Part shown: positions 1 through 19,685 of the stretch, one piece after another
How positions within the stretch are numbered: the stretch's first letter is position 1
Layout: every line of letters starts with the position of its first letter
Origin: Bugula neritina
Lineage: Eukaryota > Animalia > Bryozoa
Direction: 5' to 3'
Assembly (NCBI GenBank): GCA_964035545.1
Contig: CAXIUT010000001.1
Location: forward strand, 1-21,272
DNA length: 21,272 nucleotides
Program-made: the position numbers and the translations under genes
Notes under the pieces: generated by a model
The model's database searches: none
What the model was told of the DNA's origin: nothing
Seen by the model: only the letters and a program-made list of their open reading frames with translations

Positions 1-82
1 CCCAACCCCAACCCCAACCCCAACCCCAACCCCAACCCCAACCCCAACCCCAACCCCAACCCCAACCCCAACCCCAACCCCA
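1..82 (+). repeat. Telomere, (CCCCAA)n, left chromosome end
   Basis: Perfect C4A2 hexamer array at the start of the window, in the orientation expected for a 5' chromosome end. It is the Tetrahymena-type repeat. Confidence 0.97.
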
Positions 83-1515: not shown

Positions 1516-2889
<1,374 letters not shown>

Positions 2890-9689: not shown

Positions 9690-9763
9690 GGGGTTGGGGT
9701 TGGGGTTGGGGTTGGGGTTGGGGTTGGGGTTGGGGTTGGGGTTGGGGTTGGGTTGGGGTTGGG
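9690..9763 (+). repeat. Telomeric (GGGGTT)n tract, right end of the first fragment
   Basis: G4T2 array with one G3T2 unit, 77 nt beyond the TTLL ATG. Confidence 0.95.
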
Positions 9764-10929: not shown

Positions 10930-11011
10930 GGGGTTGGGGTTGGGGTTGGGGTTGGGGTTGGGGTTGGGGTTGGGGTTGGGGTTGGGGTTGGGGTTGGGGT
11001 TGGGGTTGGGG
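10930..11011 (+). repeat. Telomeric (GGGGTT)n tract
   Basis: Perfect G4T2 array, 84 nt beyond the ATG at 10845. Confidence 0.95.
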
Positions 11012-11168
11012 CAAGCAAAAATAAAATCAGAAATAAATCAGTTATCTTGATATCTTTTATCAAATCAAGCTTTAAAAATATAAGTTCTATTTCTTATTTA
11101 CTGCTATATAATTATTTTCTATTTTTTCGGCTGCTAAAATTTATATAATATAAAAGTCCATAGAAATC

Positions 11169-12058
11169 ATGTAGTTCCTTCTCAAAGTTTTTGATTTCGG
11201 CTATATCACACCCTAAACTCAACTTTCCAGAGCCCTCACTGCTATCTAATTCAGTAGCACCTCCTCTTTGCCCCATAACCACTACCAACTTATCATTGGA
11301 ACAGAATAGTCGAAATAGAAAAGAATATTACTCTTCGAATAACTTCTAAAAAAAGCTAGCAAAGTAACTACCTTACCATAAGTAATAAAAATATTGACTC
11401 TTATTTTTTCAGCTTTGCTCTAAAACAAATTCAATGATAAATTTCTATCACTACTCGACACCTTGTAGACTCCAGAATTCGAGCTAATCGACTAATTGAA
11501 CGCCAAATGGATAAAGTAACTCTTCATCTGTTGCAAATCATATTTGTTGAAGCTAAGTTCAATGAATTAATTGATGAAGCGAGTTTTATCACGTGAGCCT
11601 CAAACCTTCAAACTTATCTATCAGATCTATATCTGATACTAAACACAATAGGATTATTCTTTCCCTTCGTTACAAACGCCTTTCACACATTTGGAAGATA
11701 CTATATGAAAGATAACAATTATATCAAATAATTCCATAAAAAAATAAGTCACTATCTGTTAATAAACTACTAATACGTCAGGACAATCGTTGGATAATTT
11801 TTAAAGAAATATAAATAATGTTAGATAATGTAAATACAATGTTTTTTGAATACGGTTCCATAGATATAGTTAATGTGTGATAAAATAGAAGAAGTATTAT
11901 TGAGTAAATATTACAAAGGAAAAGGGCCATCACCTAAAATATATTTTAAAGAATAAGATATAGATTAAATCAACTTTCATATCAAAGATATCAATAGTTT
12001 AAAAGAAATCAGCTCGGCTAAAACTGAAGATTAAGATGTATTTTCTTAATATATTTGA
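11169..12058 (+). CDS. Hypothetical helical protein, weakly ANTH/ENTH-like
   Basis: Two long TGA-free frames that join if one base is missing near 11628. Otherwise the first frame ends at TGA 11634-11636. Confidence 0.5.
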
Positions 12059-12180
12059 TTTTTATAATATAAAATCATCTATTTATTGTTATTTTGATGA
12101 TTAAATGATTTTATTGATATTTATTGGTATTTATTGATGAATACAATATTTAGTTTGAATTTATTGATATTTATTTATTG

Positions 12181-13515
12181 ATGTAGTACGAATACCTAAG
12201 GAGTTACAAACAAAAACATATTAACTTCCAAAAACTACATAAAAAAATACTAGACAAGTTTCAGAATTAAGGATAAAGCGTAGACAAATTAAGAAATTAT
12301 GATTAAATTCTATCAGTCATGGACGAAAGAACCAATGGAAAAGCAACCAGAGGAGTCTGTGAATAACTCTTCAACCAAACAAAAAAATAAATAAGGAAAA
12401 ACATCCATTAGTAAAATGGCATGGGCTTACATAGAAAATATGGAAACAGCCAAATTATGTCTTTTAAGAGATTAAAGCAAAATTACAGATTTGAAAAGAG
12501 ATAGCAGCCATGGACACAGAAGCAGCACCTTTGTTCATCTAAAAATCATGCAAGTTTCAGTATATTCACGGTTCAGTAGCGATGCCACCCTCAGCTATCA
12601 GATTACTCCTTCCAACATCCCGCCTGTTATCTTACAAAATACTATCAATCCAACACTCAATCACTAATATACCTTCAAACTTGAAGAAGATCACTAATTC
12701 ACAATCAATTTCATGGATAGTGGTATCAGTATCGGACAGTGGACCTTCCCTGATGAGCCAGGACTCAAAGAAGGAGAATATCATAGATTGAATACCTCCG
12801 AAAATGTCGCTTTTTAAGTTCAAATAAAATATTTGCCCAAAAATAGCAGCAGTCTTGAGATTCAAAAGCACTCCTAACTTCAAAAAGTTGAATCCCGAAA
12901 AACCAACAGTCGTTCTGCCTTTGAAACTCTTGTTCTTTTTGAACCTTTTATGAACAAAAAGACAATGCCCAGGTCAATTCCTCGATAAGAATAACCTCGT
13001 AACGAAGTATAAGACGAATACTAAGGTTGTTTTTCATTTTTTGGTTATCATGTAAGAAACCTTTTTGTTTTGCTAGTAGCTCTCATCATATTCTAATCAA
13101 TGTTCAGCTACTATAGTGCCATATAATTCCTCGATGTACTTATCAAATAAACTAGTTAATTATCGCTTTCTATTTGATCGGACTAATCCAAGCAAGATAG
13201 ATTCAAAACTATAAATCATACACCACTATTTTCTTGGTTTTATGTGTTTTATTCGTATTATGTATTCTCAAGAGTGTATGGGGCATGGCTGAGCCTCCTT
13301 TCTATGACAACAAACCTCTAAAAACAGTAATGATGATAATCTGCATGATTCTCTAGATCTGTATAATAGTAGCTTTAACTATATGCATGAACAACACTGA
13401 AGACATGGCAAAACAAAGAGATCTATTTTTTTATGGATAAGAGCTAGAAGTCAAACAGCCAATTCCCCAAACAGAACCAGAAGAAGACACCATCTGGTAG
13501 CAGGGATATCAGTGA
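12181..13515 (+). CDS. Putative C2-domain protein with C-terminal transmembrane helices
   Basis: C2-like segment (VHLKIMQVSV...NTINPTLNHEYTF...IGQWTF) followed by about four hydrophobic helices. 20-nt intron at 13136-13155. One extra base, most simply in the A run 12381-12387. Confidence 0.65.
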
Positions 13516-13563
13516 TAGTTCAAACAGGTTTATATGATGGTATTTATTAATAATTAATAAGAA

Positions 13564-14202
13564 TCAAGATTAATGTTTGGAGTATGATGAACGATACCTA
13601 TTCAAAGTTATTTTGGAGGTGCTATCTTTGAAGGAAATATTTGTTGAATAGAGTTGATTAAGTTGAGAACTAATTTGAATGAATTTTGTAGGTTTTACTT
13701 GTTTTGAACTTTTAAGAACATTTATAGATGTAACTGGTTTTAATTATTCTTCTGGTAAATACTTGAGGATGTTCAGTTCGTCTTTTTTGAAGTCTATTTT
13801 CCAATTAGGCTTATCATATTTAAAAGATTCTTTGTTTTTTACTTTATTATACTCACTAATACTTATCCTTTTTCTCACTTGATAATTTTCATTGTTTTCC
13901 TTTTTACCATATATTTGTCGATAATTCTTCTTCATGCCTTTTTGATCATTTTATGTATTTAGACGCAACAGTTTGCCTGAACTCTTAAAAAATTCAGATT
14001 TATTTGAATATCCCTTTAAAGAACTACATCTTGTAAGTTTATTTGGGTTCAAAGTTTTTTTTTCTTCTTTTTTGGAAAATAAAACTTTATCCTGACTGTT
14101 TTGAAAAGACACAGACTTCTAGTATTTACTTGCTATGTTTTGAATGAAATCATGTAAGTTTACCAGCAATTACGGTTAGTTATTTAACCTAAATGCTTCC
14201 AT
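13564..14202 (-). CDS. Hypothetical K/N/S-rich protein (212 aa)
   Basis: ATG..TGA frame open under UAR=Glu. It contains track ORF 13744-13935. Confidence 0.6.
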
Positions 14203-14350
14203 ATATATTATATAGACAGGAAATAAATAGATTAGAAAAGTTTCGAAAATATTTGTAATGAAATTATTTCTAAACCATTAAAATAAAAAACATCTACTTT
14301 TAACTGATTAAAATATGGAGAAGATAATATTTTTTTTTGAGTTTTTATAA

Positions 14351-15120
14351 TCAATTAAACATTTTGCCATAAACAGCTTTTTCCTTTATTTTTTGCTATT
14401 TCTACTCATTATCCAAAACAACTCCCAAACTTTTAAAGTTCTTTACCGTTTCTTCATCTTTACTATGTTCTATTCCAAACATTATATCGTGTCGAGCAGC
14501 CGGCCAATTTTTAAGACCTTTGTTTGCACTAGCTTTTCTATACACAGTCTTAACATTAGGCTCTAAAGTCTCCTGGAGATGCTTTTAACACCATTAAAGA
14601 GCTGACTTGAACTCGGATAAGTTCAAAGTGGCTAAAGCGAGGTTACTGATAAGAGACAATTTCAATTACTGACACTTTTAACTTGGGTCATTTACAATGA
14701 GATTATAAGCTTAACTATAAACTTTAATGGCTTTTTGGTATTATTTAGATTTAATAAAACCATTTCCTTCGACTTTTAAAGTTTAAGCCCTTTCGAATGA
14801 TGTTTTTTGTTCTTTTATTTATCCAATCTTAATTAGTTCAATGATATATCCAACTTTATTATGATCTAAATATCAGTAAAATATACCTTGAATAGTCCAC
14901 TTCTATCCTTCCTTCATCTGCAACAACACTATTTCTAATTTAGAATTGAACTAATTATTCCCTAGAACTCCGGAATGATTGATAGCAATCGAGCCCTCTT
15001 TCTGCATTCGAACTAAATCACAAACAAAATACATTGGACCTTCTGGAACTTGCTAGGAACCTTTCCATCTGCCTTCTCTACTTCTTTCTTGATGATAGCA
15101 TAACCAATATCTTCTTACAT
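14351..15120 (-). CDS. FKBP-like TPR co-chaperone with a degenerate PPIase domain (242 aa)
   Basis: TPR signatures KVEGNGFIK..YQKAIKVY, SNLALATL and NVKTVYRKASA. C-terminal EKAVYGKMF resembles large immunophilins. Introns at 15013-15032 (20 nt) and 14866-14886 (21 nt). Confidence 0.8.
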
Positions 15121-15180
15121 GAGTTGATTCTAGTACTTAAATTAAATAATAATTTATTGATTAGAATTATAAAGGATGAA

Positions 15181-16575
15181 TCAACTAGAAACAAGTCCAG
15201 ATGGCATAGTACTTGTTATTGTCTGTAAAATCTGGAAACCTAACTCTTCAGCTGGAATACCGAATTGCACCAATTTGGCCTCATAAACTCTAATAGCATC
15301 ATTATATGCCTTAGTCGCATGATGAATACTATACTTCAAGTTCTTTATATTTTGATTCTTGCTTTCAATTGACTCCTTCACCTTATTCCTGATGTCTTAG
15401 ACTAAGTTGCCCTCAAGAGCTGAGTTCTGAATCAACTGATGTAGTTGAGCCTACTTCTGTTCTAACTGTTCGATCTCAGTCTCAAGTTTACGAGTCAAAA
15501 CAACATTATGTAGCTAAGCATGTTTCTTCACCTCACTTGTTAGCTTTTCAAATTTATTTTTCAAATCTTTCTTATCAAGAACCACCTTATCATATTTCTC
15601 ACTCAACTAGATAAATTCCTTATCCAATCTGATAACTTTATCTTTAATCGATATCAATTTGCTTTTATAATTTTCTCTACTCATTTTATGTTTTTAAAAC
15701 TGTCTCAGAAGTGATTTCAACTTATCTCTTTCAAGTCCATCTCTTTTAAGAGGCTCCTTGAGTTAGTTATTAGCATTTCTCAACTAAAATATTTTCTTCT
15801 TATTTTTCTATGACTCATCATTTATCCTTTTGATTTCTCCTCGATGTTCTTTGATCAACTTGATATTATCCCTTGTTATCTAATTATAATAATTTTTCAA
15901 TTCAGCAAAAGCCTCCTCATGATTCTTCATCAATTAGTTAATATGTAAGTTTTTTCTTTATTCCAACTCATGAATTTATACTCTCAATTTTAGCTAAAGT
16001 TCTTCTTTCATTTTCGATAACTTAGATTCATATCCTTTTTCCATTTCTCCTAATTGAGCATCATGATCAACAACCATATACTGTTCTTTTTTTTTATGAT
16101 CCTGTTCAGTGATCTCAGTCTGTTCAATATCAGTCTTTTCTTAATCAATCAATTCTTTTTTCAAAGTTTGTTTTTTCTTTTTCATATCCTTCATTCTATC
16201 TTAATAATATTTATTTTCCTTAACTTTGGCTCCATCTCCATCTCCTTCAATATTCATATTAGCCTTTTCCTGCTAATATTCCAACAACTTCAATTTTTGC
16301 AAAAAGACCTTCACCTCAGTATTATGATTCTGCTGCATATTCTACCCCTCTGTCTACTTATTAAGAATCTATGTATGCAACTCCTGGATCTCTAACTCAG
16401 TATTATGATAAAACTGTTAAACCATATCTCTATCCATTTGAATATAGTTTCTTTTTGATTTTATTTCGCTCACCTTCTACTTAAACAACTTCAAATTGCC
16501 CTCCAATTCAGGTGCTATCATCTTCATAAACTAGTCATCCGGCTACTCCTACTTCTTCACACGCTTAGGACCCAT
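15181..16575 (-). CDS. GAS8: Dynein regulatory complex subunit 4 (GAS8/trypanin)
   Basis: RNYIQMDRD, HNTEVKVFLQK, EERKNLHINELMKNHEEAF.ELKNYYN and KAYND..FGIPAEELGF motifs. 1395 nt, no intron needed. Confidence 0.92.
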
Positions 16576-16786
16576 CTCTTTATTAATTATGCAACTTATC
16601 AATATCAATCACTCACTACTATTATTATCCATCTTAAACCAACTTAAATACTATTATCAAATCATCCATCTCTTCTAAGATCAGATTAGTCAAGATAACA
16701 AAGAGATGATGTAAAAGATGATACAGTCAGATAGTATCAGATAGATTGAAATTGATATTGATTATGTTGTCAGATATAGTACCTTA

Positions 16787-16858
16787 TCCACGGTCGTTCA
16801 ATGGTTAGGACATCGGACTCTAAATCCGAGAACCAGGGTTCGATTCCCTGTCGAGGAG
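16787..16858 (+). tRNA. tRNA with anticodon CUA (reads UAG), tRNA-Glu-type body
   Basis: Cloverleaf: acceptor TCCACGG/TCGAGGA, D arm GTTC..GGAC, anticodon arm TCGGA-CT-CTA-AA-TCCGA (anticodon 16820-16822), T arm CAGGG-TTCGATT-CCCTG, discriminator G. Confidence 0.95.
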
Positions 16859-16865
16859 TTTTTTT
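16859..16865 (+). terminator. RNA polymerase III oligo-T terminator
   Basis: T7 run immediately after the tRNA. Confidence 0.8.
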
Positions 16866-16904
16866 ATATTATTATTATCATTTATATCATTCATTTCATA
16901 GATA

Positions 16905-19229
16905 TCATATTTATATGTCATCTTCAATCTGTCGAATAGAACTGCCATCAGTTGACAACCCATCTCCCACCTTAAACAATGGATTAATTATTCGAGGTAT
17001 CTCTCCATCTTTGCCATAAATAGGAAAGTTAATCAAAGAGTCCTAAATAACATCAATAATACCATATTTTGAGGCCAATCAACCGATAAACTATTTTTCT
17101 TAGCATCATTTTTAGGTTTAATAATATAGTCACCAACAATAGCATTAACAATTCCATGCCCACCAGAAGTACCAGGCAACCAAGCAGCAATCACAGCATT
17201 CGACAAACCCAACAACTCATCAATAAGCATAGGTCTCCCAGACAAAAGAACGCTCACTACTGATATTTTTTAATCAACTTCTCTGATAGTATTGATAACT
17301 TCTTTATCATAGGATGATATTTACACTTTAAGACTAGTCAGTTGAACAGCAGGAGCATAAGGATTGATAAAAGGGAAATACAGACATCCCTACTTACCTG
17401 CAGGATGGCATTCAGGAATATTAACATCGCCATCAGATTCAGCATAAGGAAACTATCCAAATGAGCCAATAATAATTGTATTTCTAGAATTCATATTGGC
17501 TCGTTTTGATTTAAGTTGACTTATAAATTTATTTCTCTACTGGTTTATAGCCACAGAATCGATAAAAGTTGAATAATCAGCATAGAGTAATTAAAAGTTA
17601 TTTTATTTTTGTAGATCTTTCAAAGCATCCAAAATAGAAGATGCATTTGTTTTTGTTTTAGCATCTCCTGTCCAAAATTTCATTGCCCTCAGCTCCCTGC
17701 CATCTAACTGACCATCCTCCAGCCTGCATGCCTATGTTGTCAAAACTTCTAAACAAACGAATTGTTGTCAATCTGTTGATATTTATTATCTTCTAGCCGA
17801 CTAATATTACATATTTTATTGATGATTTTAGGTTGCTTGCAGGTAAGAAGTTATTAGTATTTTTAAGCAAAACCAATGATTACTGAACTGCAGTTAGACT
17901 GTCTTGGTATTCATTGCCTGATGATGATCGAGGAAGAGATACCGATTATTCAGGACTAGCAATAGGTTAGTATTTGTTATCACTGTTTTGTTTCTAGACC
18001 AATCCCATCGCCATCTTCACAGCTAGAATTCGAGTAGTAGCTTCAACAAATCTACTTCTAGGAGCAAAACCTTTACTTTGCATCTTTTTACCATGTTCAA
18101 ATATCCTCTGAACAATCGATAAATCAGATACCATAAACATATCAACTCCACTGTTAACCATAGCAGCATAACCTTCCTCCTATTTCTCAAAATGCATAAA
18201 AGTACGAGGAATGGTCCTTGTATTCATCCTAGTCACATCATCGTAATCAGATATCACGAAACCGTTGAATTTAATGTCTTCTCGCAGTAGACCCAATAAA
18301 TACTGACTGTTTATGGCAGATGGAATCCAGTTTATACCACTATATGAGGCCATTACGGATCCAATATTCTATTTTGCACTACCAATATATCCTTGAATGT
18401 TGTGAGGCAAGTAGCTTTTAAAACTCTGAACATTAGCTGTTCCCTAGTTGGTTCCTGACTGAGTAGATCCATCACCGAAAAAGTGTTTTACACTTCCTAA
18501 AATTCCATTGATCTTGTTATTTTTAACATCCTGCAGTCCTCTTGTATAAGCTGCAGCATATTTTTAGATATTTCCATCTTGTCCCATAGTTTCATAGTAT
18601 CTGCCCCACTGAGGATTATGACTCACAGCCACAGTAGGAGCAAAAGCATAATTAAAACCAACTTTCTTCACTCCTTCTTTAGTCCAATATCCCACATTCT
18701 AAAAGTTATCTTCGTTATGAGAACAAGATAACCCAATATTATGAGGAAATAAAATAGTTCCAATCGTATGCTGATCTCCATGAACAGCATCTGTCCCCAA
18801 TAAAAATTTTAACTTGTATTTCGTATTGTCTTTAGTGGTCACTGGGATTCCTTCTTGCACAAATCTGTCAGTAAACTTCTTCCAATTAGTCACGTTGCCC
18901 TTTCTAAAAACATCCATATGTTGCGAATAATCAGCAGTCGATGGTATTCTTGCAAGATTGCCATCTTCTGTAGGAGCAGCATTTCCATTAATAAGAAGAG
19001 AACCTAATTACATTTTGACTGCATCTTCAGGACGAGTCGATTGAGTGTCTTCGTTGGATATAACTTTGAAATCAGCTTGAATCATCTGTCCGATCAGTTG
19101 AGTATCAGTCATAGATTAGGCTATCTTTCTTGATTACTAATAGTACTGACTAAAGATATCAGTTTGAGCATGAACAAGAGTCAGCAGCAGACACAAAATC
19201 ATACAGTTGAGGATGTCAGATATTTTCAT
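16905..19229 (-). CDS. Secreted glycoside hydrolase family 3 beta-glucosidase / glucan exohydrolase
   Basis: Signal peptide, IGQMIQ, GTDAVHG, FPHNIGL, PQWGRYYE, VKHFFGDG, GFVISDY (nucleophile Asp), PYAESDGD and AAWLPGT. 20-nt intron at 17043-17062. One extra base near 17674-17680. Confidence 0.92.
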
Positions 19230-19622
19230 TAAAAATAATAATATGTCATTAAAAATCCTATTTGTTCCTAACATTACCTAATATATTTAAAATAATATTA
19301 GAAAGCTAAAAGAATGAAAGCATATTTCTCACTATAGGCTTATTCTTAATTAGCCATCATTTTAATCCTTTAATAGATTCCATTAAAATAAGTTTATCAA
19401 ATTTTATATTTCAAGTTCTTATCTCTCGACTAATTCATAATTTACTATCTAAAAAAGAGTAAATTCATAAAATAGACAACCAAATAATTATTTATATAAA
19501 CCAAGCAAATGAACAGTTTACTTGTAAAATCTCAAAAAAATCATGCAATGATGTTAAAAAATATGATAATTAATGAGTTAAATCATAAACTATAGTATAA
19601 AAAATGATTAATAATGATTCAA

Positions 19623-19685
19623 GGGGTTGGGGTTGGGGTTGGGGTTGGGGTTGGGGTTGGGGTTGGGGTTGGGGTTGGGGTTGGG
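19623..19685 (+). repeat. Telomeric (GGGGTT)n tract
   Basis: Perfect G4T2 array. Confidence 0.95.

Follow-up and report, generated by a model that had tools for sequence, protein, structure and literature searches.

A tRNA(CUA) gene on ciliate-type DNA in an animal genome assembly, a likely decoder of UAG as glutamate

Introduction

Among the closest described systems is the code of peritrich ciliates, in which UAA and UAG (UAR) encode glutamate and UGA is the stop codon. It is listed as NCBI table 30 (PMC10553269, PMC11687900, PMC4695839) and goes back to Sanchez-Silva et al. 2003, as cited in PMC4967479 and PMC4695839. Oligohymenophorea sp. PL0344 (McGowan et al. 2023) has ten tRNA-Sup(CUA) genes, all most similar to tRNA-Glu, with 69-93% identity, and it reads UAA as lysine (PMC10553269). 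For Tetrahymena, tRNA-Gln(CUA) and tRNA-Gln(UUA) were described by Hanyu et al. 1986, as summarised in PMC10553269 and PMC4695839; according to these summaries, the CUA tRNA is found alongside a UUA species reading UAA (and UAG). Blastocrithidia nonstop decodes UAR as Glu with cognate tRNA-Glu (PMC12153298).

Here we analysed a window of 21,272 nt, the whole stretch of DNA under study, which carries a tRNA gene with a CUA anticodon. This is very likely a nuclear tRNA gene that is functional and transcribed by Pol III, from a ciliate with UAR=Glu and TGA as sole stop codon, and its product would put Glu at UAG.

Origin of the contig

The window is an entire 21-kb contig (C10) of a 216-Mb assembly with 321 contigs. 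Tandem repeat analysis (TRF) identified a terminal telomere repeat, (CCCCAA)13.7, on the plus strand (1..82). An internal (GGGGTT)10.5 array (19623..19685, plus strand) closes an 8.7-kb segment (11012-19685) which holds the tRNA, and similar internal G4T2 arrays lie in the same orientation at 9690-9763 and 10930-11011. The large contigs of the assembly carry animal-type tRNA-Glu, Gln, Asp and Lys genes, as well as tRNA-derived repeats. A 4.3-kb stretch around the tRNA (window 15100-19400) was found in public runs from three studies, labelled as three organisms. Together, the C4A2/G4T2 layout, the animal-type tRNAs on the large contigs and the presence of the stretch in differently labelled runs indicate that the window is ciliate macronuclear-type DNA which travelled with the animal sample. 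This ciliate seems to turn up repeatedly in sequenced samples, as an associate or a contaminant. From its code alone it would be a peritrich. Further observations on its affiliation are the C4A2 telomeres, the closest homologue of its DRC4 protein in the PDB, which is from Tetrahymena, and its occurrence in wastewater and freshwater.

The internal G4T2 arrays are ~63-82 nt long, and each passes straight into non-telomeric sequence, the junction lacking C4A2. The small contigs C11, C14 and C15 have the same layout of telomere arrays as C10, and ~8,260 pattern matches suggest that it is widespread among the small contigs. Such arrays may represent mini-chromosomes chained by the assembler or in the library, alternative telomere-addition sites, or real interstitial tracts.

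The large host contigs (C1-C9) hold a tRNA-derived element in ~500 copies, its D arm being GTGTAATGGTTAGCAC; ARAGORN does not call most of them. A search of the assembly with a D-arm pattern was swamped by these ~500 copies. A second abundant host repeat contains TTTTAAACTTTTGGGTTATTTGTTCAAAAC. A dense cluster of more than 11 tRNA genes was seen at C214:41188-45349, and C73, with ~19% GC, also has tRNAs. Both contigs look like organelle genomes, either of the host or of the ciliate.

Protein-coding genes

The genes of the window were read with TGA as the only stop, and four were recognizable, all on the minus strand. One is a tyrosine phosphatase (172-1227). The second is a beta-tubulin (1516..2841; Pfam PF00091 and PF03953, and translation), with no in-frame TAA or TAG. 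Its GC content is locally high (0.44 compared with about 0.31), and the neighboring genes use 9 to 15 of each reassigned codon. This suggests that the reassigned codons are avoided in the highly expressed beta-tubulin gene. A beta-tubulin search aimed at placing the ciliate was uninformative, the protein being too conserved, and an exact look-up of the sequence found it not on record.

The third gene (15181..16575) encodes a DRC4/GAS8 orthologue of 464 aa, with 15 TAG and 9 TAA codons in frame. Pfam gave no match on its stop-free pieces, and the protein was identified by a PDB search (8tek_E from Tetrahymena, E 9e-31). Its TGA end gives the same C-terminus as in the Tetrahymena DRC4. The fourth gene, at about 17033..19229, is a GH3 glycosidase (Pfam PF01915 and homologues) with ~10 TAG and 11 TAA codons in frame, arranged tail-to-tail with the tRNA. 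Where the gene ends on the 3' side is uncertain, and a small intron may be present there. An extra base at 17678 breaks the GH3 frame. This base is absent from the contigs of three independent studies, and the gene reads through in one frame once it is removed, pointing to what is probably a consensus error. TGA is the stop codon at the end of beta-tubulin, DRC4 and GH3.

Genetic code

For the codon assignment, DRC4 was read through with an X at each TAR codon, and short segments were aligned to the Tetrahymena DRC4. The Tetrahymena residue at the 12 aligned TAG sites was Glu in six, Asp in four (4/12), Lys in one and Gln in one. At the nine aligned TAA sites it was Glu in six, and Gln, Ala and Lys in one each. 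Two of the TAA codons (15958-15960 and 15934-15936, minus strand) are part of the block ELE-x-RKNLHIN-x-LM (15934..15960). Tetrahymena has ELEERKNLHINELM at this block, meaning that both TAA codons align with Glu. At the first one (15958-15960), Glu is found also in the Chlamydomonas, Trypanosoma and mammalian chains.

In GH3, a TAG (17453..17455, minus strand) stands at the Glu of the motif FG-E-FPYAE, a position occupied by Glu in 16/16 aligned distant homologues. The GH3 orthologue on a public contig from a related ciliate (L085) has GAG here. Another in-frame TAG (18444..18446, minus strand) is located at a conserved Glu in the context KHFFGDG...GTN-x-G, with Glu in 14/17 distant homologues. 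Summed over eight columns of distant full-length homologues, the log-odds for TAG were +8.2 for Glu, the next residue being Gln with -8.1.

Closer comparisons came from five GH3 relatives on related ciliate contigs. Their pair counts are not independent of each other and are clear in direction: TAG faced Glu in 30/65 cases, Gln in 6 and Asp in 5, and TAA faced Glu in 41/102, Gln in 11 and Lys in 5. The partner profiles of both TAG and TAA fit Glu much better than Gln, Asp or any other residue, and Glu beats Gln by 69 to 108 log2 units.

These counts bear on a reading in which the tRNA is a retained ancestral oligohymenophorean suppressor charged with glutamine, UAG being Gln. Gln was the partner of TAG in only 1/12 DRC4 and 6/65 GH3 positions, against 6/12 and 30/65 for Glu, and the Gln profile was 69 log2 units worse than the Glu profile. 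The tRNA itself gives a divided picture. Its D arm matches the host Gln tRNAs in 13/16 positions and its anticodon loop, C-U-CUA-A-A, resembles Gln loops, whereas its acceptor stem matches Gln in only 1/7 positions. In the anticodon stem, 8/10 positions agree with Lys/Arg and 6/10 with Gln, so that the likeness of this arm to Gln is unspecific. UAR=Gln was inferred to be ancestral for the Oligohymenophorea (PMC10553269) and bacterial GlnRS readily accepts CUA anticodons (PMC9976931). With the codon counts as they are, we regard glutamine charging as very improbable and retain Glu as the reading of UAG.

For TAA, the seven GH3 columns available from distant homologues had Lys on top (+10.7 vs -5.3 for Glu); all seven are variable and uninformative. 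They would speak for a split code as in PL0344, with UAG as Glu and UAA as Lys, as would the lack of a tRNA(UUA) match that could show its body type. The window tRNA would read UAG as Glu under this code too, which is a different and rarer one than table 30. The other TAA positions disagree with Lys. In DRC4, TAA aligned with Glu at 6/9 sites and with Lys at one, including the invariant ELEERKN block, and in the GH3 relatives it faced Glu 41 times and Lys 5 times, with TAA and TAG interchanging 13 times among the five sequences. Furthermore, a kinesin gene on contig C256 has TAA at the Glu of DLAGSE, the kinesin switch II motif. A split code is highly unlikely in view of these positions. The Glu partners in the closer GH3 relatives settled the TAA question in favor of Glu.

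Overall, the alignments point to a code with TAG = Glu, TAA = Glu and TGA as the only stop, that is NCBI table 30. The sequence-only reading of this DNA, a preceding account made from the letters of the window, had proposed UAG=Glu from protein evidence, and this held in DRC4 (Glu in 6/12), in GH3 (Glu in 16/16 and 14/17) and in the substitution profile. It had also spoken of a variant code served by a UAG-reading tRNA(CUA) gene. Such a gene is indeed present in an organism with UAG as a sense codon. The variant code is real as well, with two corrections: it belongs to the ciliate mini-chromosomes and not to the main genome of the assembly, and it is the already known table 30.

tRNA gene

ARAGORN called a single tRNA in the window, at 16787-16858 on the plus strand, with the anticodon cta at position 34. 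The gene is 72 nt long and matches Rfam RF00005 in full length (model positions 1-71), with 57.2 bits against a gathering threshold of 29 and an E-value of 3.4e-10. It forms a class I cloverleaf with a 4-nt variable loop (without residue 47) and the discriminator G73, and no CCA is encoded. The anticodon CTA (16820..16822) is placed in the loop C-U-CUA-A-A. The B box, GGTTCGATTCC (16837..16847), matches the consensus perfectly, and an oligo-T terminator of seven T (16859..16865) follows directly 3' of G73. The A-box-like element, TCGTTCAATGG (16794..16804), shows only a partial match to the generally known A-box consensus. The B box, the oligo-T terminator and the absence of an encoded CCA are all as expected for a eukaryotic Pol III tRNA gene.

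Minimum free energy (MFE) folding of the single tRNA sequence did not give a cloverleaf (z-score 0.44). Such a result is usual for tRNAs and is uninformative, and the structural support was taken instead from the covariance model and from covariation among 26 family members. The tRNA gene was confirmed to be intact and genuine. The intact cloverleaf with a CTA anticodon, as first seen in the letters alone, was borne out by ARAGORN, by the Rfam score of 57.2 bits and by compensatory changes in the stems. From the promoter elements claimed at the same time, the B box and the T7 terminator stood, and the A box did so only in part.

The label given by ARAGORN was 'Pyl', and its sole ground was the CUA anticodon. 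tRNA-Pyl has an atypical fold, with a 3-nt variable loop, a small D loop without G18G19, no TTC-type T loop and a 6-bp anticodon stem. The tRNA of the window has a canonical G18G19 D loop (AATGGTTA), the T loop TTCGATT, a 5-bp anticodon stem and a 4-nt variable loop, which rules out tRNA-Pyl. The eukaryotic setting, the Pol III terminator, the absence of CCA and the Glu at UAG positions speak against it too, and a pyrrolysine tRNA has next to no probability here.

Related tRNA genes in public data

To search for relatives of the tRNA, we used a 61-nt pattern derived from the window gene and its one paralogue in the assembly, and ran it over JGI metagenomes. The anticodon and eleven other positions were left free and most tRNA positions were fixed, so the high conservation of the resulting CUA family is partly imposed by the pattern. 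We obtained 24 matching metagenome contigs, with a GC content between 23% and 46% and at least a dozen different flanks. The anticodon was CTA in 24/24 matches, though it was free in the pattern. The T arm, a region fixed by the pattern, was identical in 26/26 family members. In all 26 genes, six or more consecutive T lie no further than 0-1 nt from the 3' end, their flanks being otherwise unrelated. Long reading frames, delimited by TGA and rich in TAA and TAG, are also present on the metagenome contigs. In environmental ciliate DNA this tRNA is widespread, with CUA as its anticodon in every case.

Directly upstream of position 1, most family members have a short motif, A-A/C-C/T-T-T-A (ACCTTA, AACTTA). 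It was seen at 16781-16786 in the window and in the contigs L103-L126, and may be a transcription-start or leader element.

Covariation was analysed on 26 sequences (6 of them distinct), including the paralogue on C256. Seven of the 21 pairs changed on both sides and 98.4% of the cells were paired, compared with 40-56% in slid controls, and 0/500 shuffles reached the observed values. Among the covarying pairs were 1:72 (U-A/A-U), 4:69 (U-A/C-G) and 28:42 (C-G/U-A). The first two of these lie outside the fixed part of the pattern, and the switch at 28:42 lies inside the pattern.

The acceptor stem of the window tRNA has a blemish, A.A at pair 4:69, and a G.U at 7:66. Elsewhere in the CUA family, 4:69 is U-A, C.A or C-G. 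The A.A form recurs in two independent metagenome contigs with different flanks, which points to an inherited, tolerated variant and rules out an assembly error; C.A is found in seven more family contigs. This bears on the idea that the window copy is decaying or non-functional, leaving UAG to other copies or to a tRNA(UUA) that wobbles. The mismatch itself and the MFE folding without a cloverleaf would agree with decay, and in Tetrahymena the tRNA(UUA) reads both UAA and UAG (PMC10553269). Against decay, the gene is otherwise intact, as are its B box and its terminator, and its mismatch is shared with genes in other surroundings. In addition, the Rfam score of 57 bits is about that of a canonical tRNA-Glu(UUC) gene on contig C54 (56.6 bits), and a contig from a run labelled as another organism (X2) showed 8 differences over the 734 nt covered, none of them inside the tRNA. 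We consider decay improbable, and a working UAG decoder remains the preferred reading of the window gene.

Two further lines of public data concern the distribution of the gene. L085, a Logan contig from a related ciliate (GH3 with 64% protein identity), breaks off within this tRNA, which is again placed tail-to-tail with GH3, and all 25 nt of the tRNA 3' end present there are identical to the window tRNA. On nine other public contigs with GH3 relatives we found no tRNA downstream, so L085, the closest relative, alone shares the synteny of tRNA and GH3. The same tRNA is also present, in other flanking sequence, on contigs of the runs X1 and X2, showing that it is multi-copy. All four sampled 31-mers of the tRNA were found in 20 runs, which come from 16 studies; two of the runs are wastewater metatranscriptomes. 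The k-mers in the metatranscriptomes are a hint of expression and may also be DNA carry-over. Overall, the 31-mers occur in RNA and DNA runs from wastewater and freshwater.

Decoding of UAG and UAA

C34 does not wobble to A, and the CUA anticodon would therefore pair with no codon other than UAG. The tRNA would insert its amino acid at the many in-frame UAG codons of the ciliate genes, and the codon evidence points to glutamate as this amino acid. Charging would be by GluRS, for which the sequence-only reading had proposed a relaxed specificity. The anticodon loop has A36-A37-A38, a motif recognized by isopentenyl transferases and expected in a tRNA that reads a U-initial codon, and A37 is predicted to carry an i6A-type modification.

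UAA would be read by a separate tRNA(UUA). TAA is as common as TAG, so a decoder for UAA must exist. The sequence-only reading had predicted a tRNA(UUA) elsewhere in the genome, and this prediction found no support: three patterns run over the assembly returned host Lys-UUU genes, organelle tRNAs and a host repeat, with no match on any ciliate contig. This negative says little, given how few of the assembled bases are ciliate. Among the 24 metagenome matches, in which the anticodon was free, there was no U34 sibling of the CUA body either. Together, the lack of a tRNA(UUA) match and of a U34 version of the CUA body suggest that the UAA decoder probably has another kind of body.

A second, divergent tRNA(CUA) gene was found in the assembly (G000) at C256:3981-4052 (= L032:1499-1570), on the minus strand, adjoining the kinesin gene, with a score of 62 bits. 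It is 70% identical to the window tRNA and has the same T arm and anticodon loop, but differs in having A1-U72 and A73. None of the 24 metagenome matches of the pattern search was of this C256 type.

Similarity to tRNA isotypes

The sequence-only reading had placed the tRNA on a tRNA-Glu body, citing its acceptor ends and its D loop. The features cited are present: the D loop TGGTTAGGA, the pair U1-A72 and the acceptor ends TCC..GGA. They are shared with other isotypes. In the reference set used, the host tRNA-Asp also has U1-A72, TCC..GGA acceptor ends and G73, and the TGGTTAGG D-loop, together with a 4-nt variable loop, is common to Glu and Gln tRNAs. The E. coli identity marks for Glu are U11-A24, the 13-22 pair with A46, the absence of residue 47, U35 and A37 (PMC9976931). 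The CUA tRNA has U11-A24, C13-G22, A46, no residue 47, U35, A37 and, as a eukaryotic mark, U1-A72, with A36 instead of C36; the E. coli marks are a bacterial set, and most of these features are also present in Asp or Gln tRNAs.

For an overall comparison, identity was computed with the anticodon masked, and bit scores were taken from a covariance model of the 26 CUA genes. A search of the assembly for ciliate tRNA-Gln and tRNA-Asp genes gave host genes only. The references are thus mostly host tRNAs, plus the canonical tRNA-Glu(UUC), the only one found on a small AT-rich contig (G000:C54:4568-4640 = L084:41-113, minus strand, T6 terminator). With this small, mostly host reference set, the highest identity was with host Lys-UUU (68.6%, 60.2 bits), followed by host Asp (65.2%, 59.5 bits), host Glu-CUC (63.8%, 60.0 bits), host His (62.3%, 56.9 bits), the small-contig Glu-UUC (58.6%, 45.6 bits) and host Gln (58.0%, 56.7 bits). 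Within this set, the body was no nearer to canonical tRNA-Glu than to other isotypes. By region it is a mosaic, with an acceptor stem nearest to Glu-CUC and Asp, a D arm nearest to Gln and Glu, and an anticodon stem nearest to Lys and Arg.

The proposed tRNA-Glu body was hence upheld in its individual features and not in its overall similarity, which is equally close to Lys, Glu, Asp and Gln. The assignment to Glu would come from the codon evidence and not from the similarity of the body. As judged from these comparisons, the CUA tRNA does not appear to be a recent anticodon mutant of the C54 tRNA-Glu(UUC). It is better described as a member of an older, dedicated CUA lineage, whose body seems unassignable to one isotype by similarity.

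A more specific history would start from an old suppressor lineage with a mosaic body (Glu/Asp acceptor stem, Glu/Gln D arm, Lys-like anticodon stem and T arm), possibly derived from an ancestral UAR=Gln suppressor whose synthetase identity was switched, and not from an anticodon mutant of tRNA-Glu. We regard this history as unlikely, yet worth stating for what would follow from it. The identity switch would have come when peritrich-type ciliates moved UAR from Gln to Glu, and this sense-to-sense reassignment step would have acted on the identity elements of the tRNA and not on its anticodon. The UAA decoder would then be of separate origin, since no U34 sibling of the CUA body was seen.

Discussion

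The code itself is already known, and the window tRNA is another extra nuclear tRNA that pairs with a former stop codon, with TGA alone terminating. The analysis documents what is very likely the UAG decoder of a UAR=Glu ciliate. It also flags ~300 small contigs of an animal assembly as ciliate, which should be translated with code 30 and kept separate from the host annotation. A mild surprise is that the tRNA body is not recognizably Glu-like, which raises the question of how GluRS or another enzyme would recognize it. The unassignable body may also say something about the path by which UAR passed from Gln to Glu in this lineage.

In Blastocrithidia, UAR is likewise translated as Glu by tRNAs with stop-complementary anticodons. 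That organism is a trypanosomatid, in which UGA is also reassigned and UAA has a dual meaning, and the origin of the two systems is independent. Tetrahymena is like the ciliate studied here in having an extra nuclear CUA tRNA for UAG only and a C4A2 telomere. The amino acid differs, Gln there and Glu here. The Tetrahymena suppressors are close to the normal tRNA-Gln, as summarised in PMC10553269 and PMC4695839, while no such close parent was found for the window tRNA.

PL0344 is similar in that it is a ciliate with multi-copy CUA tRNA genes reading UAG as Glu, and with TGA as stop. Unlike in PL0344, the canonical Glu tRNAs compared here reach only 59-64% identity with the CUA tRNA, which does not exceed that of Lys or Asp, and UAA also appears to be Glu. 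From the known peritrichs, the ciliate differs in being assigned to this group from its code alone. It shares with the peritrich system the use of TAA and TAG for Glu, TGA as the only stop, the ciliate lineage and a dedicated nuclear tRNA with a stop anticodon. Its C4A2 telomere fits with the Oligohymenophorea, and the k-mers of its tRNA were found in wastewater and freshwater samples.
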